From the NCBI RefSeq assembly GCF_964204645.1, contig NC_134030.1, forward strand, positions 8,705,122 through 8,769,121: 64,000 bases of DNA. Direction: 5' to 3'. The stretch is from Tubulanus polymorphus. Lineage: Eukaryota > Animalia > Nemertea. The translations under genes were made by a program, and so were the position numbers. Below, in pieces: positions 5,143 to 54,551 of this stretch (positions within the stretch are counted from its first letter, which is position 1; every line of letters starts with the position of its first letter). Below the pieces are notes generated by a model. That model saw only the letters and a list, made by a program, of their open reading frames with translations, was not told the DNA's origin and did not search any database.

Positions 5143-5941
<799 letters not shown>

Positions 5942-8498: not shown

Positions 8499-9749
8499 TC
8501 AACTGTTTTGTAAGTTTAGATAAAACAACAGATCCTCGATGTTGTTATCATCCTGTTTCAAAATATTCTCGACCTCTTCACGTTGTTTTTCGCGTACTGA
8601 TTTCTGTTTAACTGGTACCTGATGTTGCTGATGCTGTTTCCGTTGCTGATGGTGCGACGACGATGACGACTGTTGCCGCGTATGCCCGCGCTGTAAAATC
8701 GGCACGTCGCCCGATTCACCGATTTCGCAATCGTCGACGTCATTTTTCTCATCTTCGCGAAGCACGGGAACGACGTCGTACAAAATCTCGGCATTCTCCT
8801 GTAGACGATACGCCAGCAATTTCTCGTTGACGTGCACGCTGCATCCGTCGGCCATGATATGACCGACGACTCGCGCAATATTGCGCGCGTCGTCGATACC
8901 GCTGTGCGGTTTACCGATGAATGCCATTCCCAAATTCTCGAGCATCGCGCGTAAATTCGCCTTGGCGAATCCGTAAAAATTACGATACGTCTTACGCACA
9001 TTGACCCACTTGCGCGCCCACCGCGGAAACTTTATCTCCGATATTTGACATTGTTTCTGCATGAATCGACTCATATCCCACGGCCCGTCGGTGACGATCG
9101 CGTACGTCGATGCGCCGTCGTTCGAGCACAGCGAAAGCCATGATTCCATTCGCTGAAGAACGTCGGGGAAAGCGTCGGCGCTGTCGATCACCTCCTGGGT
9201 AATACCCGTCAACTCTGTGCAGAACGGTGACAATTTCGAGTTCTTCTGCGGCCTGCAATATTCGTGAAACTCCGATTCGACTTTTAACGTGTTAGTGTTC
9301 AGCAAAATGGCCGGAAACTCGATTATCTCATGCGGAAAGTTTGTGCCGTTACTTTCCTCACAGGTCGCCTCGAAATCGATGATTACGAGATAATCGTATG
9401 GCGTTTCACGTTTAGTTACGTTCGCGATGCGCGCTTTAACGAGTTTCTGTTTTTTGTACAAATTCTTCAGACGCTTTTTCAGAACTTCTTTCACGCCACG
9501 CGTGTCCATGTGATACTTAGCAAGCTGTTCCCGTAGCTCCAGTTTCGTCATTCTGTTCACTTCGCCGTTCGTCAGCGATATCTGTTTGTAAACGGGATCG
9601 CTGAACGGGCCATCGTAAGAATGCCTCTGATCATCTTTATTGACTGTCCGCTGTGGATTCGGTTTATGTCGGGGTTTCCAGTTATGCACAGTTGCCGCAT
9701 CGGGACCTTCCCCGCAGACATCCAACTGCAATAAGCCTCCTTCTGCCAT
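8499..9749 (-). CDS. ERI1: 3'-5' exoribonuclease 1 (SAP domain + DEDDh exonuclease), single coding exon, 416 aa
   Basis: SAP-like MTKLELREQLAKYHMDTRGVKEVLKKRL. Exonuclease motifs IIDFEATC, EIIEFPA, TDGPWD and HSGIDDARNIA. The probable ATG (9749) lies just after a 5'UTR acceptor (ttgcag, about 9768). Minus-strand AATAAA at about 7522. Confidence 0.93.
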   Translation of the reverse strand: MAEGGLLQLDVCGEGPDAATVHNWKPRHKPNPQRTVNKDDQRHSYDGPFSDPVYKQISLTNGEVNRMTKLELREQLAKYHMDTRGVKEVLKKRLKNLYKKQKLVKARIANVTKRETPYDYLVIIDFEATCEESNGTNFPHEIIEFPAILLNTNTLKVESEFHEYCRPQKNSKLSPFCTELTGITQEVIDSADAFPDVLQRMESWLSLCSNDGASTYAIVTDGPWDMSRFMQKQCQISEIKFPRWARKWVNVRKTYRNFYGFAKANLRAMLENLGMAFIGKPHSGIDDARNIARVVGHIMADGCSVHVNEKLLAYRLQENAEILYDVVPVLREDEKNDVDDCEIGESGDVPILQRGHTRQQSSSSSHHQQRKQHQQHQVPVKQKSVREKQREEVENILKQDDNNIEDLLFYLNLQNS

Positions 9750-9930
9750 AATAACAAACACGAAAATCTGCAATCGAGAAACAATACATATCAAAACTCT
9801 CATCTCATAAAAAACCCAAAAATTTGAAATAAATTGAATTAAACTTTAACCATCTTAAGGTTAATAGAGCTTTAAAAAAAACAAATCAGAACAACATTCT
9901 TCACGATATGTGGAAAATACATCTGATAGG

Positions 9931-27965: not shown

Positions 27966-28496
27966 AATTATCCTGTTACAAATCAAAACAATTCAATTCA
28001 ATTCAATCAAATTATATTTGTAAATAAAATTCTTACGGAAAAAAAGAAATCAGGGATAACCCCCAAACCGAACGGACTCACCGTTACGAGAGTGAAAAAC
28101 TCCCTAATATCCTAATTCCTAGATTTTTACGGCGAAAAAATCCAACGCGTTCTACTGCGAGAACGCCAAGAAAAAAGATGGCGGATTTCGCCGGTGGCTA
28201 AATGCAATACCGCAGGGCCGGGTCGTATAGAAAAACCATTGGCGATAAATCCAAATTTAGAAAATATTGGCAAAAACCATAGGAAAGGGTACAGTACTCG
28301 ACGGAAATAGTGAAATTTACAAATCACGCTACATGTAGATGTACTATATATGCCACAGAAAATTACTTAAGCCTAGAAGCACCAATAGAAATTAAATCTA
28401 ACTCGATAAATTGATAGATAAAGAGGCATTCCACATTCTTCTCTTCTCCAACAACTGGGTCTATTATCCTATGCATTGCTCGTCTCTGTTGTTACC

Positions 28497-29456
28497 ATGA
28501 ATTCAACTCATGTTAAACTTCATCGACCGTTCAGCAGTTTCTACCTGCTGATGTCCGTGGAACACCAAACACCGGGCAACACTCGTACGGTTTCAGCCAC
28601 TACCATGCTCATCATTTTTTTAGCGGGCATCTTCGGAAATTCAGCCACTTTCATGATAATGACGAGTCGCCGATTCAGATATCTATCGTACGCGAACTAT
28701 CTCATCACTCTTTCAGTGTGCGATTTTATATCTTGTATTTACTTAACATTGATGCCGATGCTACAATTCGTTCTCCTGCACGTCAGCCACGGCCCGATAT
28801 TCATCATGAAGTCGCATCTCAGCTGCAGCTTCTACGAAATTCTGCTTGCATCCGCTGCTTTCACTAGTTCGTGGTTGATAGTAGCGATATCCCTAGAACG
28901 TACGGCAGTCGTGCTCTTCCCGTTCACGTCTCGTCTGGTGTGCACGCCTAAATTCGCGCGATGCGTCATCTTGTTTATTTTCACTTTGAACACAGCTCTC
29001 TTACCGATTCACCCGACGATAAAGATTCACTTTCTCGATAAACAAGGATGCTTTTACGAAAGAGTCACGAGGTCATACCTCGCGTTCATCATATTCATCA
29101 CAGTTCATTATTTTCTACCATTAATTCTCATCGTCTCGTTCAATTCTATTACAACCGTTCAATTATTCAGAGCAACGAAAGTGGCTTCGACTGATAATAA
29201 AACAAGCAAAACTAAACGTACGACGGTCATGCTCGTTACAGTTTCGCTCACGTTCGCTGCACTGACAGTTCCATCTACGGTCAATCCAATGTTACCAATC
29301 GATCAGAAGTTAAAAGATATCCTTTCAAACGTATTCACTCAGATGCTGTCTTGCAACTATTCAATCAATTTCTACATTTACCTTTTACTCGGTAAAGAAA
29401 TCCGTGCATATTTTGTGGAGAAAATTTGCAAACCGAAAAAATTAAGTCAGTTCTAA
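28497..29456 (+). CDS. Intronless rhodopsin-class GPCR, paralog 1
   Basis: Hydrophobic segments consistent with 7TM. GN in TM1, LSVCD in TM2, ISLERT in place of DRY, NFYIY in place of NPxxY, and an N-terminal NST sequon. Confidence 0.92.
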   Translation: MNSTHVKLHRPFSSFYLLMSVEHQTPGNTRTVSATTMLIIFLAGIFGNSATFMIMTSRRFRYLSYANYLITLSVCDFISCIYLTLMPMLQFVLLHVSHGPIFIMKSHLSCSFYEILLASAAFTSSWLIVAISLERTAVVLFPFTSRLVCTPKFARCVILFIFTLNTALLPIHPTIKIHFLDKQGCFYERVTRSYLAFIIFITVHYFLPLILIVSFNSITTVQLFRATKVASTDNKTSKTKRTTVMLVTVSLTFAALTVPSTVNPMLPIDQKLKDILSNVFTQMLSCNYSINFYIYLLLGKEIRAYFVEKICKPKKLSQF

Positions 29457-34430: not shown

Positions 34431-37400
34431 TTATCGCCGGCCATATCCACCTCCTCCACCACCCTGCGAGCTATAGCCTCCTAAAAACGTTTAAGAAAAA
34501 ACAATTATACCTTTAAACCAGTGGGAGTGATATATCAATGTTGTTCACGTTTACTTAAAATAAGTGTTTGATCTACCGTACATACATTGACGTTCTAGCA
34601 GCTTGCGACATTGTTATTGTAAAAGCACTCACCTCCGTAGGGTCCACCGCTTTGACGCTGCGAGAAGTCTCGCCCTCCTTTCATCGGGCCACCTCCATAA
34701 CTATCCTGTTGGTAGCCGGAGCCCATATTGCTAGCGTTACCTCCTTGTTGCCAGTCATTACCACCTGAAAATATAACAATTCGTTATGTCACCCATATAT
34801 AGGTTGCTCAAATCGCTAGATCGTAATGAACGATATTCCTGCAAAGATTATTTACAATCAATCGAAAAAGAAAGCCGAAAAAAATGCTAACAAACAAGTT
34901 AAAAAAATATCTAGATGATTCTCAAAAGAATGTATATGTATATGTATTTTCTATACTATCCTGACTTGACAATTGACTCCAGCAAAGATATATAATACCG
35001 GATGGATATTGAGTGTAACTGGACGCTCAATAAGTAAACGCTGACTGTCATACAATACAAGCACAAAACGCTGCATTCGCTTCATTCACCGGCACTGGTA
35101 CTACAAATAAATTTAATCATTTCAACACAATTCGTTGTTCGTATCATACGGCATGATTTCATCAAATTTATGAGTGAACGTTCGATTCAAATCGTCCTAA
35201 TCAGTTTAGACGCGGTAAAATGTGATATTCAATTCATTGGTACTGTACTTGATTTCACAATAGACCTTAGTTGATTTTGACGAAGCGTTCGCGAAATTAA
35301 ATCAAAATTTTTCATTATGGACGATCTACGGCTCATAAACCCACGTTTGGGCGGAATCATGAACTCGACTGGTGTGTTCATGGAGCGACCTTTCGCCAGT
35401 TACGTTCTACTCATGTCGCTTGAAGACCAGACACCAGGCAACGAACGCCGGTCTTCGATTGCCGTTATGCTGGTCGTATTCGTCGCGGGCGTCTTCGGGA
35501 ATTCGGCCACTTTCATGATAATGACCAGTCGCCGATTCAGGCATTTATCGTACGCGAATTACCTCATCGTTTTATCGGCATGCGATTTCCTGATTTGTAA
35601 CTATTATACGTCGATGCCTCTGGTGCAATTCATTCTCTTGCACATCAGCAGCGCGCCGATAATGATAATGAAATCCGTGATGAGCTGCCGATTCTACGAA
35701 TTTGTGCTCAATTTCTTCGGTTTCACCAGCTCGTGGCTACTAGTAGCCATAACGCTTGAACGCGCTGCAGTCGTGCTCTTCCCGTTCACGGCTCGTCTGG
35801 TGTGCACGCCGAAATTCGCGCGTTGCGTCATCTTGTTCATCGTCGCGTTGAACGCCGTTTTCTTGCCGATTCACCCGTCGAAAAAGCTATTCTTCCACGA
35901 CGAACACGGATGCTTTTACGAGGTCGTCGAGAACATTTTCCCGTTGTTCGTTACGATGATCGTCAGCACCTATTTCCTTCCCATATTTCTGATCGTAACG
36001 CTCAATTCGATCATTACCGTTCAGCTATTAAGAGGTTCGAAAGTGGCTTCGACCGAAATAAACAAATCGGCCAAGGCGAAACGGACGACGGTGATGCTCG
36101 TCACCGTTTCGCTCACGTTCGCAGTGTTGACTATACCGTCTACGATGATTCCGTACTTGCCGTTTAGTCTGAAGCTTAAACTTTATCTTTTAAGCATATT
36201 CACTCAGTTGCTATCGTGCAACTATTCCGTTAACTTTTACATCTATCTATTACTCGGCAAGGAAATCCGCGCCTACTTCGTGGGAAAGATTTGCGCGTCG
36301 AAAGCGGAGTAGGAAATTTCGAAAGGGGCGGGAGTAGATAAAGCGGGTCAGTTTATTATAACACATCGCAGGTACTACTACTGAAAACTCGATAACTTTC
36401 ATCATCCTTCGACAACAGACGCAATAGATGTAGAATGACTACCCGTGGTTTTACACAGGAATTAATCCTATAACTGTTGGTATTTTGGTACTAAAAGGTT
36501 TATCAACATTAATTCAGTACCTATTTACTGCAAATACTACTGCAACTACCTTATACCCGAAAAAGATACTTTAACGATTGTGTGGCATATCGATGTCAAT
36601 ATTTTTTTAGTATATTTGGTATATAGGGAGTGATGTAAAAATTTGTACAATATGTCTTACAATATTTTTTGTTATCACCATGAACGCAGTTTCCTCACCA
36701 ATTCACCCCTCGGAAAAGGAGTGATCCTACGGTCACTGAAATATGCTTTTTTTGATTGTCCGAAAAATATGTACCTTGTCTACATAAATTTCCTCGTAGA
36801 AAATTATTTTCTCATCCCCATAATACATTCAATTCAATTCTATCATTATTCTGCTATTCAGGACTTCAAAAATTGTTTCTACCGACAGTAAAACGGACAA
36901 GGCAAAATTACAATTTTTGGAACTAAAATTTGTATTTCCGAGTAGTACTTACCCTTTCCTATGGTTTTTGCCAATATTTTCTAAATTTGGATTTATCGCC
37001 AATGGTTTTTCTATACGACCCGGCCCTGCGGTATTGCATTTAGCCACCGGCGAAATCCGCCATCTTTTTTCGTCATAGCAGACCAAAAAAAAACAGCTAT
37101 GCGGGGCAGGTGGGCGGGATTCCCACCATAGGAAAGGGTAAGTACTACTCGGAAATACAAATTTTAGTTCCAAAAATTGTAATATTTCCATCGAGTACTG
37201 TACCCTTTCCTATGGTTTTTGCTAGACTAGCCTAGCACAAGGATGGTGGGAAAGGTAGATAGAAAAACCACCGCTCAAACGCAAGGTAAGAGGGAAAAAG
37301 AGAGCACTTACCCAAGCACGGAATGGAGCACTGTAGCACAGGGAAGACCGGTTGGCCACAGTGAGTCCGTCCAGCTCAGGGGCCCCCCCCAGAATTTTGC

Positions 37401-43400: not shown

Positions 43401-46400
43401 GCTGGTTCCTCAGTTGAGAAAATGGTCTTAAATCTTAAGACTGGTCTTAAGTTGTTAGATTGGTTATAGAACTAAGATGGTCTTAGATTGGTCTTAAGTC
43501 TAAGCCATGACCATGGAACTGGGCCCAGGTGCACAATGTTTGGCTTCTTCCCTCGTTATTGATTCCATACACAGTTGGATTTTGATCGACATCAACACAC
43601 CAATAATTTCCCCATGATTTCTAAAAAATCCTGCTCAAAATGATTATTACGCTGCCAGATTATTTTATGAACAGTTTATAATGGATGGCAACAAATTGAC
43701 AATGACGCTATAGGACATATATTCATAGGGTTCATAGTACTTTTTACCTATCTTTTAATTAAAATGGCAAATGTGCCACGTTTATCATTTATGACGACCG
43801 AAACCCTCAATCCTAATCCACAACATAAATTATCAACTCAACATCAGTTGTCTACATGCATGTGAAAAATGGATTTGAAATGGAGGGCAGATTATCATGG
43901 ACGATATGTCTATAATACTGAACGTGTAGTATTATTTACAATTCTGACACAATGAAACGAATTCATCCTTTTTCAAAGCAAATTTAGAATCGCACTCTCA
44001 CATTGTATGAAAGAATATATAAAGTATTTTAAGTGAAATTTACCAATCACAATAGATGTATTATGTTACGAAAAATTCTTTAGCCACGAAGAGTCACCGA
44101 AAAAAAATCGAATTTAACTTATAAATTAATAGATAAAGAGGGATTTCACATTCTATTCACCTACAACAACTGTAACATTGCTTATCTTTTGTTGACATGA
44201 ATTCAACACAAGTTAAACTATATCGACCATTCAGCAGTTTCTACCTGCTGATGTCTGTGGAACATCAGTCACCGGGCAACAATCGTACCATTTCAATTGT
44301 TATTAAGCTCATCATATTCATCGCGGGAGTCTTCGGAAATTCAGCCACTTTCATGATAATGACAAGTCGTCGATTCAGATATTTATCATACGCCAACTAT
44401 CTCATCACTCTTTCGCTGTGTGATTTCATATCTCTCCTCTACTTGACATTGATGCCGACGCTACAATTCGTTCTTCTGCACGTCAGCCGCGGTCCGACAT
44501 TCATCATGAAGTCGCGTCTCAGCTGTAGCTTCTACGAAATCATGCTCGCAACCACAGGTTTCAGTAGTTCGTGGTTGATAGTAGCGATATCCCTAGAACG
44601 TACGGCAGTCGTGCTCTTCCCGTTCACGTCTCGTCTGGTGTGCACACCTAAATTCGCGCGTTGCGTCATCGCGTTCATTTTCGCTACGAACGCCGCTTTC
44701 TTACCGATTCACCCGACGATAAAGATTCACTTTCTCGATAAACAAGGATGCTTTTACGAAAGCATCGCCAGGTCGTACTACGTTATGATCACGCTTCATT
44801 ATTTTCTACCGTTAATTCTCATCGTCTCGTTCAATTCTATTACAACCGTTCAGTTATTTAGAGCTACGAAAGTGGCTTCGACCGATAACAAAACCGGCAA
44901 GACGAAACGTACGACAGTGATGCTCGTTACAGTTTCGCTCACGTTCGCCGCGTTGACTATCCCGAATGTCGTAAATCCATTGTTACCGATCGATCAGAAG
45001 TTAAAAGATATTCTAACAAACGCGTTCACACAGATGATGGCGTGCAACTTTTCCATTAATTTCTACATATACCTTTTACTCGGTAAAGAAATCCGTACAT
45101 ATTTTGTGGAGAAAACTTGCGCATCGAAAAAAATGAATCAGTTCTAACCAACGACCATTAATAATAATTTTGCATAATACTTTTACATTTTACTTCATAT
45201 GAGTAACATTGGCCCTACCGGCTTTTAAAAAATTCCCTCAACCCACTGAGCGCCACGCAGGGCGTTATTAGTGGGTTAGACCGGAGAAGAACCCTCGACC
45301 AAGAAACTGTCGCCAGCAGGGTTTGAACCCATAAACCCTGGATTGACGAGACCAGTGATCGGCGGCTTAACCCACTCAACCACTGCGCCTTTCACTTGAT
45401 GCCAACGGCCTCAATATAAACAGTACGAACGCCGTGGCTCGTGCGACTAGAATATAACCACTGAACAGAGAGATGGGTGGATGCTGACAAAATCAAACAC
45501 TTAAAACACGTTGCATACGAAACCTATGATTTCAAGCAGTTGATACAACATCTCCCATGTGTAATCATTTCCGTCAGGAAATATACAACATCATTTTCAG
45601 AATTCTGAACACATCTACCAGATGGGTTATGAACCAACAGCTCATATATCAACCTAAGAATGAACCACAAACTGACCTTGGTTATTGTATCCTCCGCTGC
45701 CGGTACTCTGTCCATAACTGGTGTTGTTCTGATAGCCGCCACTGCCTTGGTTGTAGTTGTTACCGCCGACGGCATAACCACCGCCGCCACCACTGCTACC
45801 CTGGTTGTATCCACCTCCGCCTTGATATCCGCCTCCTGTACCGCCCTGGTTATAGTTTCCACCCGTTCCGTATCCGCTGCTCGAATTAACCGGTGGAGCA
45901 TTGTACGGAGCACCTACGATACGACGAATACATGCTTTAATACTTATTTCGCAATATCAAAACGATGATAATGTCAAGCCATTATCAACCGCACAATCAA
46001 TGTCAAAATAAGACTTCTCGCCAAAATCAGATGAAGTGAGGATGTGTAAGGGTTGGCCTCGTACTCGCCAGTGGTTAAGGATAAATCACTTCCAAAGCCA
46101 CTTTATCACTTTATCAATCATTGTAAGGAATGAAAACAGTCTAACCGATCAGTTATTCCGGGATATAAGGAGTTTCAAAAGAAGATTTTGAATTTAGGGG
46201 AAGCGTCTGCATCACTTTCATATCCCACCTAAACTTGATTTCTTAGTTTGTAACTGTCTAATTGGGCTCAAAATCCCAGTTGTGACTAATGATTTAGGCA
46301 ATTTACTGTAAAAATACAAACCAGACAAAATTTTCTAACCGCTATTTCTCAAAATTGAAGGAGTTTTGAGCATTTTAATATCAAAGTGCACCAAGCACCT

Positions 46401-49400
46401 TGAAAAGCACTTTCTATTAAGGAGTTTTTAAAGGATCAAAAAGTACAACACTTATAGACTACTACAAATACTTACGATCAGCTACGACATCTCTGTTGTA
46501 ACCTCCATCACGCGGTAGGTTGTCGCGGCTACCGCCGCTTGATTGGCTGTAGCCCATATCGCGATTCTGGCTATAACCGCTGTGGTCGCGCGGTTGATAA
46601 TTGTCGTAACTGGACTGCGGCGGATCGTTGTAGCTCGCGCGTGACCCGTAACCGTTGCTGCTGCCGCGGCTCGCGTTGTCGTTATAGTTCCCTCCGCCTT
46701 GAGGAGCTCCTCCATAACCTCCGCTGCTTCCACCATAATTACCGCCCTGGTTGCCCTGATTGTAATTACTAGCCGGTGGACCGCCATATCCTCCTACAAT
46801 TCATACGATATATGTTTTAACAACGCTAGCAAAATCTTCACTATTAGTCCAAAGCGTTAACAAGCCTCAGCCATAGCAATTCACAACAAATTCAAAATTA
46901 TCAAAGGCGTTGCCTTGCATACTGCCATATATGCCTGTGTTTTAGATAATTCATAAAATCGAAAGGTCCAAAATTCATTACCTTGATCATATCTGTCATT
47001 GTTGTAGCTTGGCCCATCATTGTAGCCACCTCTGTTACCACCTGTAAAGAATGATGTAGAAAGTTTCATGTAAAGGCGACACGTATAATACCAGAACACT
47101 TTAAGTAAAGCCACATAGTAATCAATTCGAACCTGGTGGGCTTTGATTGTAATTATCATATCCACGGTCTCCACCACGGGGTGGACCATCGCCTAAAACG
47201 ATGCAAAAATTCGATCAACAATAATTCAAAAGGTTGTTCAGATATCTCATCATATCCATAAATACAAACTCACCTCCGTAGCCTCCTGCACCACCTCCAT
47301 AGTTACTGGGTGGTGGAGGTCCACCACCACGACCTCCCTGGTAACCACCACGACCCGCTGAAATTAGTAAGAAACCGGACTTGCAAAATGAAGGCAAAAC
47401 TTAAGAAATCACAAGGAATTCACCGACTGGACATGTTTTTGACTGACCTGGTGGACCAAAATCTCTACCACCACGCTCATAACTGCCAGAACCTCCACTT
47501 CCACCACGACCACCTCGTTCATAACCACCATCCGGACCACCTCGGTTTCCTGGAACAAAATACGAACAATCATTACCTCGTCTAGCGCTGCGTAGACAGG
47601 CAAACAAGCAACATTAAACTACCTTGTCCACCATATCCTCCTTGATTGTTGTAACCATCTCCACGGCGCTCATAGTTACGGGGGCCATCAAAGTTACCGC
47701 CGTAATCACCGCCACCACGTCCGCCCATCGGTGGCCCTCCGCGACTACCTCCACCACGTCCACCAACACCACCTCGTCCTCCTCCTCTGATACCACCTGA
47801 AAATATCATATGCAATATATTTCGTCTTACAAATAGTGCATAAACAGGATTCAAAAAGTTGTGCTGCAAACTGCACAAATTTAGGGTATCAGGATAATTG
47901 CCCCCCCAAATTAAATCTTTTTAATCTTAAATTAACACAGATATTTACTTCATATTCATTAGACAAAGTGAACTTATTCTAGCAAATTACTCTAGGACTG
48001 CTTTAAAGTTTTTGATTGGCTAAAGTAACACTAAAACTAATTCCAATAAATCAGCGAATGTTAACTAATGCACTAATAAGTGGACTTATTTAGTTTCCTT
48101 TAATTTGGTAAGTGAATTATAATTAATTACACAAGGACTGATTTCAATTTTATGATCTGCACACAACATCAGTAATTTTATATCTTATAAATCTATATTC
48201 AATAATATACAAATGAATTTCTAAGTTAAGTATTTAGGTGGTGTTAATCCAAATCAAAAAGGATTTCATTCGTGGGGCAATTGTCCTAGAGCCCAAATTT
48301 AGGCGTAGTCTATAAAACTGAAAAATTTCTATTGCTGATTAGCCAAAATTAAAGGAGTTTAGCTCAAATGAAAGACACGCACCGAGTTTCAAGCACCTTC
48401 TAAATCAAAAGTTTTCCATTTTGAAGTATTTAAGGAATCAAGGAGTTGTAGGGACCCTGATATAGCTGAACTCGGTAAAAAAAACTTATGTCAACAAATA
48501 ACTATACCTCGTCCACCCGAAGGACCATCCATATGTCCACCAGGTCCAGCACCACCTCCTCCGCCTGAACCACCTCGTCTTTCGAACTGTTCTCTAGCCT
48601 GTACCAACTCCTGTTTACTCAAACCCTTTTTAGCTTCACATCTTTTACCCAAAACATCGAAGTGTTTCAGAACTGAAAATGGAAAAAACTTCTTTGAACA
48701 CACAGTTTAAAGGAAATGAAAATCTTCACTCGACTGAATGTCACACAGTACTGAATAGAGTCCTATCAGCTCGAATCATTTTGGACTAACAAAATTCATC
48801 CAGTTCTGAGAAATCTGGATTAAAGGTAATTTTCTTGTATATCAATGAACAAATGGACTGCAGATATTGTCCCGATTATACCAAAATCTGGATTAAGCAG
48901 GTCTGACTGTATCACTAACATTATTGTAACCATATAAACTAAAAACATAGATGATTATTATTAATTGATCATGACGGCACCGAAAGAAATTGAAGAGGTA
49001 TTACGTAAGCGTCATGTATCGAGATTATGCTCTCTTCACTTACTGAAAACCTTATCTACAGCATCTGATGAATCCATCGTAATGAAAGCAAAACCACGAC
49101 GTTTTCCTGTATTCTTATCGATGACGAGATCGACCTTTTCGACCTTTCCATGCGCTGAGAAAACATCAATGAGATGAGACTCTTGCACTTCGTCTTTCAG
49201 TCCGCCGATAAAAATCTTATTCGTACAGAAATGTGCTTCCGGATTTCCACTCTCCTGAAAAATGGACAAACCAAAAATTGGTCAGGCGTACTGCACATAT
49301 AGACAGGACCCCTACAAATTCATGGTTCCTACAGAACCATCGATATGAAATTGAGGGGTATTTGAAGGGCTTTTGAGGGTATGATCACCAAATTTGAGGG

Positions 49401-51347
49401 TTATTTTTCACGACGAAAACCTAATCGATACATAAAACAGAACCAGTAGAATACGTGGCATACTTATCAGCCCATACCAAGTAAAAAATACATTTAGGCA
49501 CCTATGAATTATAACCTTATTAAATTCAACTATTTTCATTAGTCAATCCCGATATAAGGAGTTATCTAGGATAAAATTCTGCATCACTTTCAATCTCAAT
49601 TACTGTAGACTCCTCCGAAATCATTACTGTTAATCAATTGGTGGTGTTGTGACCTAAGTTTTACTCCTATGCACTAGGGCCTACATAAACTAGCAACACA
49701 AAAATTCCCCATTGCCTATTTCTCAAAATATTAGGAGTTATGGTAATCTCGCTCAAATTCATTTAAGGAGTTTCAAGCACCCTTTAAACATTTTCGATTA
49801 AGAAGACATTTTTGAGGAAGCAGAAAATGTCAGACATTCCCTGCTTCAAATTTTGGTATATCAGCGTTAAAACTTTCCATCCAATACATTCGCACTGATA
49901 TTCTTCTAAGGTTAAAAGCTCACCTCTCGCGGAACAGCTCGTTTTGATTCCACTGTTCGGCCATCAATTGTATGAGGCTTAGTTCGCTGTATTTCATCAA
50001 CTGCATCAGCCTTGGCAAAGGTGACAAAGCCAAAACCTTTAGATCTACAATAAGCAATATTATACCAGTCAACAAACTCTGATGATCTCAATGATGAATA
50101 ATGGAAAACAAAATGAATGAGCACAACATCAGTTTTGGCTTATAACGGGGCAAAAACTTTTTCTTCATAATTACATGTGGGCCTAATATCTTAATTTTTT
50201 TAAATCATTTTATCTAATGCAAGCTGTATGATATATATTCAAGGAAAAATTCAAGAAGCAATGGTAGCTCGAACATCAGTTTTCAGATATGCCAAATGTA
50301 ACTTTCACAGAATAATACAGGGATGCTGAATCTGAATGTAATTTTGTAATACTTCATTACTGAAGTAATGAGATTTTTTTTTCAGAATTCTGGGTTTCAT
50401 TAGAAGTTATTCCATGGAATGACCAATTTACGCAAAATATCCTTTGAATAATATCATGTTAGGTTTTTAAGCAGTTATCTCAATAACAAGATATCCATTG
50501 AATTAGATTTAAAGGATAATGGTTTTATTTTGTTATCTATATTACTTAATTACAAGGTATCAATTTAATTATACATTTATGCCAAATATTACCTAGGTTT
50601 TCAATTTTGTTTATTATAACAGCTTATTGAAACCGGGAGCAAAATATTGTGTCCAGGGATTGATAGGGAAACAAAAAATGTTCTGAAATTATAACTCTCG
50701 CAGCAACGTACTTTCGGGTATTGTTGTCACGAATTACAACGACATCCAATATCTCTCCGTATTTGCCATAGTACTTCTTCAGCACATCTTCATTTGTGTC
50801 ATAACTCAGGCCACCAATAAAAAGCTTTCGCAACGCTTCACATTCCATCTAAAAAAATACACAGGAAATAAGTTCCAAGATTCTTTCTTCAATTTGGCAA
50901 TTATTTATGATATTTTTTAACAAAATTGATTGGAACATTGTTATTTAACAGAACAACTGATCCCCTTTGTCTCGATTCAGATTCATATTCATGTTCAATT
51001 CTTTATTACAACTTAGAAGTTTTACAGTAAAACATACAAGTACATAATGCAATACAGGAAAAAAAAGGACAATTAATTTTACAGAGTAGAAAATTACAAT
51101 TTAAAATTTAAAAGAAACATATAGCATATAGCAGCCACGACGAGTGCCCACAATAAAAAAAATCGGTAGTTAGTACGACTACGAATTTGCAACCCATAAA
51201 AATGCGAAAAGCAACATCAAAAGCCCCATTTTTAGGTTCAAACACATTCTATATCATAGATAGAAACAAAATACAACTTAATCGACTTAACAGACAGTGA
51301 TCTTAGCGTAAAAAAGAGGTTTGATTCGGGAAACTTACATCAGCCAT
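34431..51347 (-). CDS. HNRNPA1: hnRNP A/B family protein (A1/A2B1/A3 co-ortholog): two RRMs, a long Gly/Tyr/Asn-rich domain and an M9-like PY-NLS; 619 aa if all exons are used
   Basis: Coding exons: 51339-51347, 50712-50848, 49924-50044, 49044-49254, 48508-48672, 47623-47796, 47448-47549, 47274-47357, 47133-47192, 46982-47041, 46476-46793, 45677-45913, 34633-34764, 34431-34480. All are GT-AG, total 1860 nt, in frame. RNP motifs [15 protein letters not shown] and [21 protein letters not shown]...RQSGGPY; the protein ends YGRR*. Confidence 0.92.
35317..36312 (+). CDS. Intronless rhodopsin-class GPCR, paralog 2 (antisense, inside an hnRNP intron)
   Basis: 331-aa ORF with GNSATF, LSACD, ITLERA and NFYIY. 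Clearly paralogous to GPCR1 and GPCR3 but more divergent. Confidence 0.92.
   Translation: MDDLRLINPRLGGIMNSTGVFMERPFASYVLLMSLEDQTPGNERRSSIAVMLVVFVAGVFGNSATFMIMTSRRFRHLSYANYLIVLSACDFLICNYYTSMPLVQFILLHISSAPIMIMKSVMSCRFYEFVLNFFGFTSSWLLVAITLERAAVVLFPFTARLVCTPKFARCVILFIVALNAVFLPIHPSKKLFFHDEHGCFYEVVENIFPLFVTMIVSTYFLPIFLIVTLNSIITVQLLRGSKVASTEINKSAKAKRTTVMLVTVSLTFAVLTIPSTMIPYLPFSLKLKLYLLSIFTQLLSCNYSVNFYIYLLLGKEIRAYFVGKICASKAE
37482..40409 (-). CDS. DIRS copy 2 ORF3, tyrosine recombinase
   Basis: Same motifs as copy 1; frame intact. Confidence 0.92.
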   Translation of the reverse strand: MSAAGSNPLVRPLWRRLALPGRLSGLPSPFPKATAPDEVTSRHAAKTRSGGLNLSGSQGTGREGSDRTSLQRNFSRLVFSNIHGTKGHRGSTDSDRSVIPQSAPRHSKVPDDQAQGRDSRAPSGSMGGFIGPERCLLSGSNSPKISAISQDKVERPPVPIQVSSIWPQYGPVGFHQVGQVSSEGTSVKGCSTVRLPRRLVNSREFGSGMSGGNDLSLGRSPSARVPRKQGKISVDAGPTVHLSRHGLRSPNRQSLSVYGSSGQTSRSCSGSVHNPENSSLLVTASRLHQLHGSGGALRPPQKQALATILEGLLVSVEGQLGGLDSRTSNRSKSGSSVVGGHYESSARGVTSPVRGSSSCIHGCQSPRLGGTSGEPSQSREMVSLRGHQPHKFPRNAGRVEGPEVLSQESGGPPRLASHRQFNSEGLPPEPRGHSLRNPHRSVGQNSSLVPDKGRVPDCGTFSREKERDGRCSVSSRSGYCDRMGSPPRSSRSGSGHFWQSAAGSVCHPVQSEVSSVCVPVSRRGSVGGRCLLSGLVGDACVCVPAHTSPAALTGSNREISQLQHSSGSTMLAGSEMVPTTSQPTVRQPQDSSEFPIASVSGDLSASSKQPVVKSARLAIVQRSLSASGFSEQAASFIAGSKRPSTSTIYDAKWSHFADWCAAGEIDPCSPSVAQLADFLLHLFVAKGLQVITIKGYRSAISHTLRASGWPNVAGDHRISQLVAGFSISRPRVTRTVPPWDLSVILKKLMEAPFEPLSAASFANLSKKTVFLLFLACSARRSEIHALSVRPGHIVFGPANEFVSLRPALEFLAKNQRPGSVGRQWRIKALKHRVEPGIPDRTLCPVRALCFYLDRSASRRGSRERLFIPLLDHLKGDISRDTVARWVSSMIKDILLKENLSSEGVVSHQVRSMATSCAAFSGAPLEEVCRAAFWNSPSTFTSFYLRDVSGQLGSLASLGPVVMAQGVRSFRSDPLV
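38393..40564 (-). CDS. DIRS copy 2 ORF2, RT-RNaseH-methyltransferase-like
   Basis: YLDD, FTDAS and DLFA...YAFPP; frame intact. Confidence 0.95.
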   Translation of the reverse strand: MPVGELARNFNNRVKPRPVVTVPVRIEARGRLQKGALPFGKTRNEFLGPVGGCLQQAATHWSDLFGDGWPSRVVSRGYRLRFLRRPRLMRSPPDMRPKPGQEALISPALKELAEKGAIEPVCNETSPGWFSRIFMVPKATGGQRTVIDLSSLNRHLDIPRFRMTKPKDVIQGLRPGQWAASLDLKDAYFQVPIHPKSRRFLRIKWKGRQFQFRSLPFGLSTAPWVFTKLVKSVQKVLQSRGVRLFVYLDDWLIVANSAQECREAMTSVLDVVHQLGFRVNREKSQLTPAQQFTYLGMDFDLRIGKVFPSMVRVAKLQEAVAGVSTTPRTARYWSRLLGSISSMGLVVPLGRLRSRRLQQYWKVFWSQSKGNWEALIPVPPTDLSPDLQWWAATTNLRLGVSLAPLEAPVRVFTDASHQGWGAHLENRVKAGKWSRYEATNHINFLEMLAVWKALKFFHRRVEGHHVWLATDNSTVRAYLQNQGGTHSETLTGLSAKILLWCQTKGVSLTVAHLAGKRNVMADALSRRGQAIATEWVLHQEVADRVRGIFGNPLLDLFATRFNRRCPLFVSPFPDAEAWGVDAFSLDWSGMHAYAFPPTPVLPRLLDQIERSVNCNIVLVAPCWPAQKWFLPLLNLLCDNPRILPNFPSLLSQGIFRHHPNSQWLNLLAWPLSSDPCQLQAFQNRLPPLSQDLSGHQQVPFTMPSGVILRIGVLQGKLIHAHPL
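40431..42680 (-). CDS. DIRS copy 2 ORF1, gag-like
   Basis: Two amino-acid differences from copy 1; frame intact. Confidence 0.88.
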   Translation of the reverse strand: MPPPPKGQHRGGEGCGHLFGAWDNHDSCASCRRKSGQICARSNPCNICVVWSEDLWLRADKALKLRDRRRVSRDSSVSADVPTDVSNPVSYRKAERSPVVQVRSASQLRSPGKNAGSPAPVSGHSPVSGRSPVRPVRPVQTTCSEPSARRGSRERPAPVRSVPVRSGSGIGPVRSGSATGPVQTSSGTKHPVRSSSDSDRRSGDRARSPTRFRRRERNKRARSPSRRSRFDRERDYDRYCRKFRRRSSHRSSTSVSDESDSSSRSRSRSRDRHRSRHDRRDTGKYLTQKDFHVFEEKILNLLSSSQQVAATSTTGKPIPDCPVRSSPAHSVFRNSDSEFLDAAVGSDFNEDPVPEAAIPSGVVPVASNCGLPQTMGASLARNVSPSRSVLSEPAGDMPFRAMISEFFVKHGATRAKPTAAPLVGESMEAYRPPDSDLNVLRESSAVSREWARLDTQLWGECRPGTFSFPPPERGMKSGKYFSSTDPPIGAFRSAYYATPGAVDHSHNCLDADYTLISPDTVTAQSGIRLPKSGLVAMTSILDNLTRVGSFQDMALKVLTGELRETHAAVHAGSDPESVALKLEGMDRIIQSLARSVSHVIPLSVRGQANLVLASRQSVMDSSAKTRLPDMVSNALLRAPLGTSSRLFSGWCAPVSAELRKIREVQAKSNPRTPWKKRSGPTPAAQGSARTQTGPSQTSALSQAASDAGWRTSAQLQQSCQASSGRNSSGSYRGKGKAPKRGSSFRKNSK
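44197..45147 (+). CDS. Intronless rhodopsin-class GPCR, paralog 3 (antisense, inside an hnRNP intron)
   Basis: 316-aa ORF, closest to paralog 1. Its upstream flank (43940-44197) is homologous to 22115-22185 joined to 28310-28497. Confidence 0.92.
   Translation: MNSTQVKLYRPFSSFYLLMSVEHQSPGNNRTISIVIKLIIFIAGVFGNSATFMIMTSRRFRYLSYANYLITLSLCDFISLLYLTLMPTLQFVLLHVSRGPTFIMKSRLSCSFYEIMLATTGFSSSWLIVAISLERTAVVLFPFTSRLVCTPKFARCVIAFIFATNAAFLPIHPTIKIHFLDKQGCFYESIARSYYVMITLHYFLPLILIVSFNSITTVQLFRATKVASTDNKTGKTKRTTVMLVTVSLTFAALTIPNVVNPLLPIDQKLKDILTNAFTQMMACNFSINFYIYLLLGKEIRTYFVEKTCASKKMNQF
45210..45389 (-). mobile_element. tRNA-derived SINE-like element
   Basis: Minus-strand head GGCGCAGTGGTTGAGTGG (A box) ... 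GGTTCAAACCC (B box), followed by a non-tRNA body. The left boundary is approximate. Confidence 0.55.
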
Positions 51348-51680
51348 TGTTAATCTTTGAGTTGCGCGAATGTCGAGAGATGGCGTGGGCTCGGTCACGT
51401 GACGCAGAATCTTTCGGCAATTTCCGTAAAATTTAATTTTCAAAGTTAAAATTAATCGAGTCAGAATTTTTCTAATAAATATATACGTTGGAAATCATCT
51501 TTAAGAAATTATCGTATTGTTTTCTTTGTAAAACTATTCCTGGTCTTCGTTTTATCGTCGATGAATGATTCCCGCCGCGGTGAATGCGCATGCGTCTCCC
51601 CCGGTAGATTGGAAGAAAATTTTTCCTTTCACTGCGTCAAAAATCTCTTTTCTAGCCTAATTTTATTGACTAGGAAGGTA
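51348..51680. promoter_or_regulatory. Bidirectional promoter region shared by hnRNP (-) and HP1/CBX (+)
   Basis: CpG-rich patches with YY1-like AGATGGCG (51378), palindromic E-box GTCACGTGAC (51394), E2F-like TTCCCGCC (51569) and NRF1-like TGCGCATGCG (51585). The first plus-strand donor is at about 51678. Confidence 0.7.
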
Positions 51681-52657
51681 GGGTATCTAGCTATCTAGCA
51701 TGGTAAGACACTGATGATTATTTTGTCTATTTCTGTTTTCAGGTCGTCGTTCGGGTTGTTGAAAGGTGATCAGTGAAAGAAAATGTTTGCTGTTTGATTT
51801 GTCAACTTAGTCTGTATTTAAACCGCTTGATATTAAGGCGGTCAGTGTTTCACTATTTACCAAGCCTTTTTCTTCAGCCTTACATTCACCTCGGATATTA
51901 ATGAAATAACTTCAGATTTATTTGTAGTTTCGAAATCTGCTGTGGTAGTGTTGTTCTGATGTAAACTAATCAATTTATCTTTCTCTTATTTTCACTTGAA
52001 CTCGAAACATTCTCATTCATTTCATTCCCCTGAGCTGAGGAGAATCTAAGGAGAATCCACTGTATATGATCTAGCTGATAGAGTAAAGGCCAAATGCCCT
52101 GCGATTAAAACATTATCAAATCTGTCTACTACTACTACTACTACTACTACTACTAAAATAGACAAATATCGCATGTCATATCAACATTGCGATGACTGAA
52201 AGACCAACAGTGATCATAGGTCGTAATTACAAATTATTATTATATCCTCATCATCTATCCTCTATCGCTTTAAGCCCTTTTCAAAGAGGGAATCAATGGT
52301 ATTAACTTTCTCTTAACGTGTGATACTAGTATCAGCTTATTTTCATCACTCGTGACGGCAAAAATCTCTATAGGGCCTTATAGGACGGGACTACAGTTTA
52401 GGTAATGTGGCCTAACAATAGTGACACAGCAGACCCAAACTGAAAAGCTAGAAGTTGAACTGTTAACAAACTGTAGTGTAAATATAATTCAAACAATGAC
52501 AATTTGACAATGACAAGTTTTTCTGCAGTCATTAATCCTTATACTCTGAAAACTTAAACTAGGCCTGATTTTAGGAGGCCATGATTTTAGTTCTGGCCGT
52601 TCTGAGTAGAAGTCTTGATTTTCTGCTAATTTCGCAAAATCGTTTTCTTATCACTAG

Positions 52658-54551
<1,894 letters not shown>

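Follow-up and report, generated by a model that had tools for sequence, protein, structure and literature searches.

Do two genes that lie head to head fire from a shared promoter, or are they simply neighbours? This question is raised by a 64,000-nucleotide stretch of the genome of the nemertean Tubulanus polymorphus (NCBI RefSeq assembly GCF_964204645.1, contig NC_134030.1, positions 8,705,122 to 8,769,121 of the forward strand; hereafter the window), in which an hnRNP A-type gene (minus strand) and an HP1 gene (plus strand) are arranged divergently. Vertebrates keep the corresponding HNRNPA-CBX pair in three to four copies beside Hox clusters, and the Tubulanus locus shows the unduplicated state of this multiplied pair. 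The A2UCOE, which comes from an HNRNPA-CBX pair, is the most widely used anti-silencing element in biotechnology, and a second question is whether the nemertean spacer is an ancestral form of such a ubiquitous chromatin-opening element (UCOE). What is new here is that, within lophotrochozoans, both the adjacency of the genes and the layout of the promoter region (side, orientation and distance from the hnRNP ATG) are kept across three phyla. Sequence comparison and analogy with an oyster mRNA lead us to consider it likely that the two genes diverge from two apposed core promoters, with HP1 transcription starting at about 51586-51600 and a non-coding first HP1 exon.

To identify the two genes, we ran searches exon by exon rather than on a joined spliced model. 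The domain content of the minus-strand gene identifies it as an hnRNP A1/A2B1-type gene with two RRM domains and a glycine-rich C-terminus. Its start codon is the CAT at 51345-51347 on the forward strand, and the first coding exon, as read from the sequence, is a mini-exon of three codons (51339..51347; ATG GCT GAT, giving MAD) with a GTAAGT donor at 51338. This mini-exon joins in frame, after a tttttttag acceptor, to the exon that begins at 50848, about 490 bp downstream (exon 2, 50712..50848; first half of RRM1, Pfam RRM_1 1.6e-8). Exon 3 (49924..50044) carries the second half of RRM1 (SKGFGFVTF...KRAVPRE) and has hnRNP A2/B1 and A1 as its best phmmer matches in PDB (2e-19). Exon 4 (49044..49254) holds the linker between the RRMs and most of RRM2 (Pfam RRM_1 2.9e-13; PDB hnRNP A1 6e-28). 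Exon 5 (48508..48672), placed by translation and splice sites, completes RRM2 and begins the glycine-rich tail, so that the tandem RRM_1 pair found with Pfam is spread over four consecutive minus-strand exons. The C-terminal exons are stop-free segments rich in glycine, tyrosine and asparagine (approximate span 45657..47920, with approximate exon borders). Against PDB, the RRM exons matched hnRNP A1/A2B1 at 6e-28 and 2e-19, hnRNP D-like proteins at 2e-17 and 1e-8 and Musashi at 1e-6 or worse, and matches to DAZAP1 were also far weaker than those to A1/A2B1. Two N-terminal RRMs closest to A1/A2B1 and a glycine-rich, low-complexity C-terminus are the features of the hnRNP A/B subfamily. The ATG at 51347 is supported because a tiny first coding exon of two to four codons followed by a GT donor recurs in all five loci of other species that were read at base level (Crassostrea, Patella, Lingula, Haliotis and Lamellibrachia).

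The plus-strand gene encodes a chromodomain, a basic hinge and a chromoshadow domain, which together identify it as a member of the HP1 family. Its first coding exon (52683..52824; ATG at 52685) encodes an acidic N-terminus and the first half of the chromodomain (Pfam Chromo 5.5e-7). The second half and a lysine-rich hinge follow at 53278..53431 (Pfam), the first part of the chromoshadow domain at 53766..53866 (Pfam Chromo_shadow 1.1e-5), and the remainder with an acidic tail and a TAA stop at 54404..54551 (Pfam 1.2e-13; PDB CBX1/CBX5/CBX3 1e-19). No full-length HP1 of T. polymorphus itself was found in the protein collections; the nearest sequence was a 180-residue HP1 from a related species (P0239, about 88% identity), encoded by metatranscriptome contig L002. 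This protein is 85, 73, 100 and 94% identical to the four coding exons in turn, and the L002 mRNA aligns exon by exon to the same borders, which fixes the coding junctions. The nearest named HP1 proteins are those of molluscs, annelids and a brachiopod, at 65-78% identity, with arthropod and vertebrate proteins at about 50-55%, a pattern of lophotrochozoan type for a lineage that is poorly sampled.

The two ATGs, 51347 (-) and 52685 (+), point apart at a distance of 1,338 bp. Between them we found no sizeable open reading frame (ORF), no tRNA and no Rfam match, and Rfam and tRNA scans of 44-58 kb were likewise empty; therefore, no hidden RNA gene explains the spacer. The head-to-head layout that the first-pass annotation had read from the window is thus confirmed by exon structure, Pfam domains and the positions of the ATGs. 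The 268-Mb genome has a single chromoshadow locus and a single RRM2 exon of hnRNP A type; the pair is therefore unduplicated. On this sequence evidence, its orthology to the vertebrate HNRNPA1-CBX5 and HNRNPA2B1-CBX3 pairs, of which it is the single-copy, unduplicated counterpart, is secure.

To place the locus in a wider context, we compared seven species: the Tubulanus window and loci of Crassostrea, Patella, Lingula, Paralvinella, Lamellibrachia and Haliotis, which were found via their HP1 proteins. All six fetched loci had a two-RRM gene that matches the hnRNP exons of the window, upstream of HP1 and on the opposite strand. The distance from ATG to ATG is 6.4 kb in Crassostrea virginica (L003), 1.86 kb in Patella vulgata (L005), 1.86 and 1.87 kb in two Lingula anatina sequences (L006 and L007), 5.6 kb in Paralvinella palmiformis (L008), 9.6 kb in Lamellibrachia satsuma (L011) and 2.2 kb in Haliotis rubra (L012). 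In Ixodes and Acanthosepion, no neighbour was seen within 10 kb. The earlier annotation had proposed that the pairing predates vertebrates, had asked for a microsynteny comparison and had named absence from related invertebrates as grounds for doubt; the pair is present in three molluscs, two annelids and one brachiopod. The genes are immediate neighbours in 5'-5' orientation and the arrangement occurs in other major animal lineages (for vertebrates, going by the literature), as expected of a conserved microsyntenic pair. The pairing itself and its age before vertebrates are already published and are not new: Irimia et al. (2012, PMC3514665) name HNRNPA2B1-CBX3 as one of the conserved ancestral microsyntenic pairs (CAMPs) that four or more major lineages of animals have in common.

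Cbx and Hnrnpa also serve routinely as Hox-linked markers (PMC10927551). The window contains the last exons of alkyldihydroxyacetonephosphate synthase (AGPS) on the plus strand (5143-5388 and 5600-5938; PDB 4bby 1.4e-23, Pfam FAD-oxidase_C). In human, AGPS adjoins HNRNPA3-NFE2L2 near HOXD, and the wider synteny of the Hox paralogon may be preserved here. Lingula has a bZIP_Maf gene at a distance of 6.6-7.2 kb on the downstream side of HP1 (L006:19678-20840 and L007:18442-21273; 768 residues and NFE2L/CNC-like on L007). NFE2/NFE2L genes are linked to CBX-HNRNPA in vertebrates, a linkage that the Lingula gene echoes. On the Tubulanus contig, the nearest bZIP_Maf match is 2.7 Mb from the hnRNP-HP1 pair.

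We then examined what lies between the two Tubulanus genes. The four motifs that had been pointed out there on first reading, YY1-like, E-box, E2F-like and NRF1-like, are all in place. Closest to the hnRNP ATG (30-38 bp) is the weakest of the four, a YY1-like GAGATGGCG at 51377..51385 (+), which reads CGCCATCTC in the hnRNP sense. It is followed, 49 bp from that ATG, by a palindromic E-box of USF / MiT-TFE type, GGTCACGTGACG (51393..51404), and by an ETS/STAT-like 12-mer, AATTTCCGTAAA (51419..51430, +). On the HP1 side there is an E2F-like TTCCCGCC in the HP1 sense (51569..51576, +; 222 bp from the hnRNP ATG) and an NRF1-like palindrome, TGCGCATGCGTC (51585..51596), in the vicinity of the predicted HP1 start. 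There is no canonical TATA box between the two modules, the only near-TATA being TATATA at 51483-88, so that the region combines the motif classes of bidirectional promoters (E2F, NRF1, YY1 and MYC/USF) with the lack of a canonical TATA. The E-box GTCACGTGAC and the NRF1-like GCGCATGCG are each unique in the 64-kb window, and no place in it other than 51340-51710 combines at least three of the four classes. Of 5000 dinucleotide-preserving shuffles of this interval, not one had more than two classes; this number and the motif-class count are generous because the motif definitions were chosen post hoc. The description of the spacer as CpG-containing also holds, with 22 CpG in the 363-bp promoter region and an observed/expected (o/e) ratio of 1.66. 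An NRF1 gene, encoding the candidate binding factor, is present in the Tubulanus genome. Matches to NRF1 occur at G000:C3:7491174-7492411 and about 15 other places, as one multi-exon NRF1 gene and many scattered single-exon copies of its DNA-binding domain, which may reflect a gene-family expansion or may be transposon-borne.

Comparison between species showed that these motifs keep to their sides. Six of the seven species have a CACGTG E-box (GTCACGTGA-type, usually (G)TCACGTGA(C)) at 29-107 bp from the hnRNP ATG, for which the binomial P is about 3e-10 against a locus background of 0.16 per kb. ATGGC-type, YY1-like elements occur near the E-box in Patella, Lingula and Haliotis. The E2F sequence TTCCCGC, always in the HP1 sense, is found 194-289 bp from the hnRNP ATG in four of seven (the window, Patella, Haliotis and Lamellibrachia) and, under a looser pattern, in five of seven (P about 1e-7), Lingula having GCGCGAA and TTTGGCGGG there. 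TTCCCGC is also present upstream of the start of the oyster HP1 mRNA. An NRF1-like element follows the E2F site by 10-45 bp in the window, Patella, Haliotis and oyster. The GCATGCG core is 240-316 bp from the hnRNP ATG in three of the seven species, with NRF1-like variants in Haliotis and oyster, and in Paralvinella the identical 12-mer TGCGCATGCGTC occurs at 279 bp. All three molluscs can be aligned across the entire module, as TTTCCCGCG, then CCCGGAT, then CGCWTGCG, and GT donors occur 45-110 nt after the E2F/NRF1-like module in all species. In five of the seven, the hnRNP-side and HP1-side modules are 150-250 bp apart, roughly the extent of a single nucleosome-free region. The motif alignment that had been suggested for this locus therefore shows side, order and orientation kept in three phyla, with not every motif in every species. 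We regard the side-specific conservation of the E-box versus the E2F/NRF1-like elements across three lophotrochozoan phyla as a modest new comparative detail, drawn from these sequences.

Could such a cluster be a product of chance, or a generic feature of housekeeping promoters whose likeness between species is convergence? Bidirectional promoters as a class show enrichment of E-box, E2F, NRF1 and YY1 motifs (PMC4721113), the spacing differs between species and some species are without one motif. However, side, order and orientation are identical in species of three phyla, the binomial P values for motif placement range from 1e-4 to 3e-10, and exact 12-mers are held in common, AATTTCCGTAAA with Patella (where it likewise lies beyond the E-box) and TGCGCATGCGTC with Paralvinella. 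The alignment of three molluscs over the whole E2F-CCGGAT-NRF1-like module also speaks against convergence. We consider this explanation very unlikely.

An oyster transcript bears indirectly on the position of the HP1 start. Oyster mRNA contig L004, which encodes exactly the C. virginica HP1, maps to L003 at 98-100% overall and at 100% for its first two exons. The contig begins on the NRF1-like element, at L003:9414, which is 30 bp past TTCCCGCG. The oyster gene thus has a non-coding exon 1 of 66 nt (L003:9414-9479), a 490-bp intron and its ATG in exon 2. The window has the elements in the oyster order, then a CATG/GTAAGA donor at 51702/51703 and a pyrimidine-rich cag acceptor that ends at 52682, two bases ahead of the ATG (the exon begins CAATG). 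In Lamellibrachia and Haliotis the E2F module has remained next to the hnRNP gene, kilobases from the HP1 ATG exon, an arrangement that only a non-coding first HP1 exon in these two species would explain. From the oyster mRNA start, the matching element order, the donor and acceptor, the motif-free and CpG-poor sequence upstream of the ATG and the layout in Lamellibrachia and Haliotis, we infer a Tubulanus HP1 start at about 51586-51600. By analogy with oyster exon 1, the predicted non-coding exon 1 is 51586..51702 (+; start approximate), and the predicted intron 1 is 51703..52682, 980 bp that are AT-rich and CpG-poor, include a (TAC)9 repeat at 52129-52155 and end in a tcgtccgcag acceptor. 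Predicted exon 1 terminates in an ATG at the donor (AGCATG/GTAAGA, 51700-51702); if spliced to the exon at 52683, this ATG would open a 28-codon out-of-frame upstream ORF overlapping the HP1 start codon. Haliotis has a matching AAGCATG/GTAAGT (L012 ~8157), and oyster and Patella are without the terminal ATG.

A competing explanation is that HP1 transcription starts just upstream of its ATG, at about 52.5-52.68 kb, so that the two starts are about 1.2 kb apart and the E2F/NRF1-like cluster is a promoter or upstream element of the hnRNP gene, with no compact shared promoter. This would accord with HP1 exon 1 being a prediction in Tubulanus and with the 5' untranslated region (UTR) of the relative's mRNA not aligning to it. 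Against it, the 300 bp just upstream of the HP1 ATG are AT-rich, nearly free of CpG (0-3 per 100 bp in 52400-52680) and empty of E-box, E2F and NRF1 motifs. Wherever the E2F site occurs, it has the orientation of HP1, and the longer transcript would have a good GTAAGA donor and a cag acceptor available to it. In oyster, moreover, the HP1 mRNA contig begins at the E2F/NRF1-like module even though that module is detached by 5.8 kb from the hnRNP gene. We give a start at the ATG a small but real chance.

Two apposed core promoters, the arrangement that we favour, would operate as follows. The hnRNP 5' UTR runs rightward from 51347, so that its start must lie to the right of this position and is probably within the YY1-like/E-box cluster. 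The hnRNP side would use the USF/MiT-type E-box GTCACGTGAC and the YY1-like element within 60 bp of the three-codon first exon, and would take USF/MiT-TFE or Myc-type bHLH-ZIP factors. The HP1 side, about 170-190 bp further, has the sense E2F site and then the NRF1-like palindrome, and would take E2F and NRF1. HP1 transcription would begin at or just after this palindrome (~51586-51600); its non-coding exon, of about 100 nt, would end at the donor at 51702 and be joined across 980 bp to 52683. A single region of nucleosome size, 200-350 bp long, would thus serve both genes, with promoters about 150-250 bp apart. Since the predicted starts are less than 1 kb apart, this would be a bidirectional promoter by the usual definition. 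An E2F/NRF1 input on the HP1 side fits the proliferation-linked expression of HP1 and the reported binding of E2F at human CBX5 (PMC4721113). The compact promoter of about 300 bp that was suggested initially thus appears to hold, at some 200-350 bp, on the conserved position and orientation of the motifs and the start of the oyster mRNA.

Several points weigh against this model. The modules are 5.8 kb apart in oyster (L003:3558-9413), the E-boxes being with the hnRNP gene and the E2F/NRF1-like elements with HP1; closeness of the modules is not obligatory, and shared regulation is unproven. This separation therefore suggests two core promoters that can be parted, each with inputs of its own side, and not a single indivisible element. 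In Tubulanus, HP1 exon 1 and both start sites are predicted features. The 5' UTR of L002, the relative's HP1 mRNA, gave no significant alignment to 51340-52682 or to predicted exon 1, a result that is uninformative at 78% coding identity, and an oyster hnRNP mRNA, sought as a means of placing its start relative to the E-boxes, was not found in two metagenome scans. The YY1-like element is weak and variable, Paralvinella is without an E-box (TGACGTCA is in its place) and Lingula is without a clear NRF1-like site. Both the motif definitions and the distance zones were fixed with the window already in view, and the P values are optimistic because CpG-rich motifs are commoner in promoters generally than in the background used. 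The oyster locus is also a natural 'experiment' in which the two halves are 5.8 kb apart, and the choice between a shared promoter and two neighbours is testable with short fragments.

The first-pass annotation had gone further and named the spacer a UCOE candidate. A UCOE is defined as a methylation-free CpG island over dual divergent housekeeping promoters that confers resistance to silencing (PMC2629730, PMC4330381). If the Tubulanus element were a true ancestral UCOE, it would be a methylation-free island that, like the human A2UCOE, actively opens chromatin and keeps neighbouring genes or transgenes from being silenced. The locus is orthologous to the source of the A2UCOE, the genes with divergent promoters are housekeeping in vertebrates, and the CpG o/e ratio reaches a local peak of 2.0-2.4. 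The genome also has DNMT1. Of the dual-promoter property, divergent orientation is observed, both promoters probably lie within the element, and housekeeping expression is assumed from orthology. The reading of the promoter as a CpG island was rejected on composition: the 363 bp are only 38% G+C, and their o/e ratio of 1.66 is only in the top 8% of windows, against an overall ratio of about 1.0 in the 64 kb. The flanking gene bodies are barely depleted in CpG (0.69-0.99), which gives no evident sign of an unmethylated island set off from methylated flanks. The oyster arrangement further argues that the two halves are independent promoters, and a UCOE is in any case defined by function, which lies beyond sequence evidence. 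The candidacy was therefore not borne out, failing on island composition and on the separability of the oyster modules, and we consider a true ancestral UCOE here to be improbable. It would likewise be a long shot that the two-module layout is an inherited bilaterian architecture, common to CBX5-HNRNPA1 and CBX3-HNRNPA2B1 for more than 500 million years, and that its 360-bp version has anti-silencing activity as a minimal natural UCOE. A UCOE role and the practical promise of a 360-bp UCOE are speculative.

The DNMT1 orthologue (L010, G000:C7:2920213-2922362) was the only C5 DNA-methyltransferase match in the genome, with no DNMT3-like match at the search sensitivity used. Elsewhere in the window, an ERI1/3'hExo-like gene on the minus strand (8502-9845) combines SAP and RNase_T exonuclease domains in one exon. 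The same strand has, at 22.7-28.0 kb and 37.4-42.7 kb, a pair of nearly identical retroelements, each about 5.9 kb long, whose long ORFs are intact; they encode reverse transcriptase and RNase H, have 982- and 758-residue ORFs without a Pfam match and look DIRS-type. Three tandem single-exon genes for rhodopsin-family G-protein-coupled receptors (GPCRs) are on the plus strand at 28422-29453, 35281-36309 and 44197-45147; only about 500 bp separate the end of the third from the last glycine-rich exon of the hnRNP gene, to which it is convergent. The retroelements alternate with the GPCR genes, which suggests a recent segmental duplication.

As a comparison with known systems, human promoters were considered by their published description and not by sequence. 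At human CBX5-HNRNPA1, the same gene families are likewise head to head and TATA-less, with E2F, USF/MYC E-box and YY1 sites (PMC4721113, PMC3362940). Human CBX5 has a non-coding first exon and a long first intron (PMC4721113, PMC3362940), as predicted here for Tubulanus HP1. Of the factor sites that the earlier annotation had named for this human promoter, E2F, USF/MYC and YY1 are described (PMC4721113), but NRF1 is unconfirmed there, since NRF appears in that paper only as a motif generally enriched in bidirectional promoters and not as specific to CBX5/HNRNPA1. The two systems also differ: the human shared promoter is about 0.6 kb and in a CpG island (PMC4721113), whereas the Tubulanus region is not a compositional island, and the E-box, which descriptions of the human promoter place upstream of the CBX5 start, is on the hnRNP side in Tubulanus. 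At human HNRNPA2B1-CBX3, hnRNP A-type and HP1-family genes likewise diverge from closely spaced promoters, and the pair shows very high co-expression (PMC3514665). The A2UCOE is a methylation-free CpG island of 1.5 kb or longer, with anti-silencing shown experimentally (PMC4330381, PMC2629730), whereas the Tubulanus element, of about 360 bp and 38% G+C, is known from sequence alone. HSPE1-HSPD1 and other CAMPs are likewise non-paralogous 5'-5' neighbours with short spacing across phyla, which has been explained by shared or interlocked promoters (PMC3514665). Unlike HSPE1 and HSPD1, the products of the HNRNPA-HP1 pair are not subunits of one complex, and in oyster this pair tolerates 5.8 kb between its modules.

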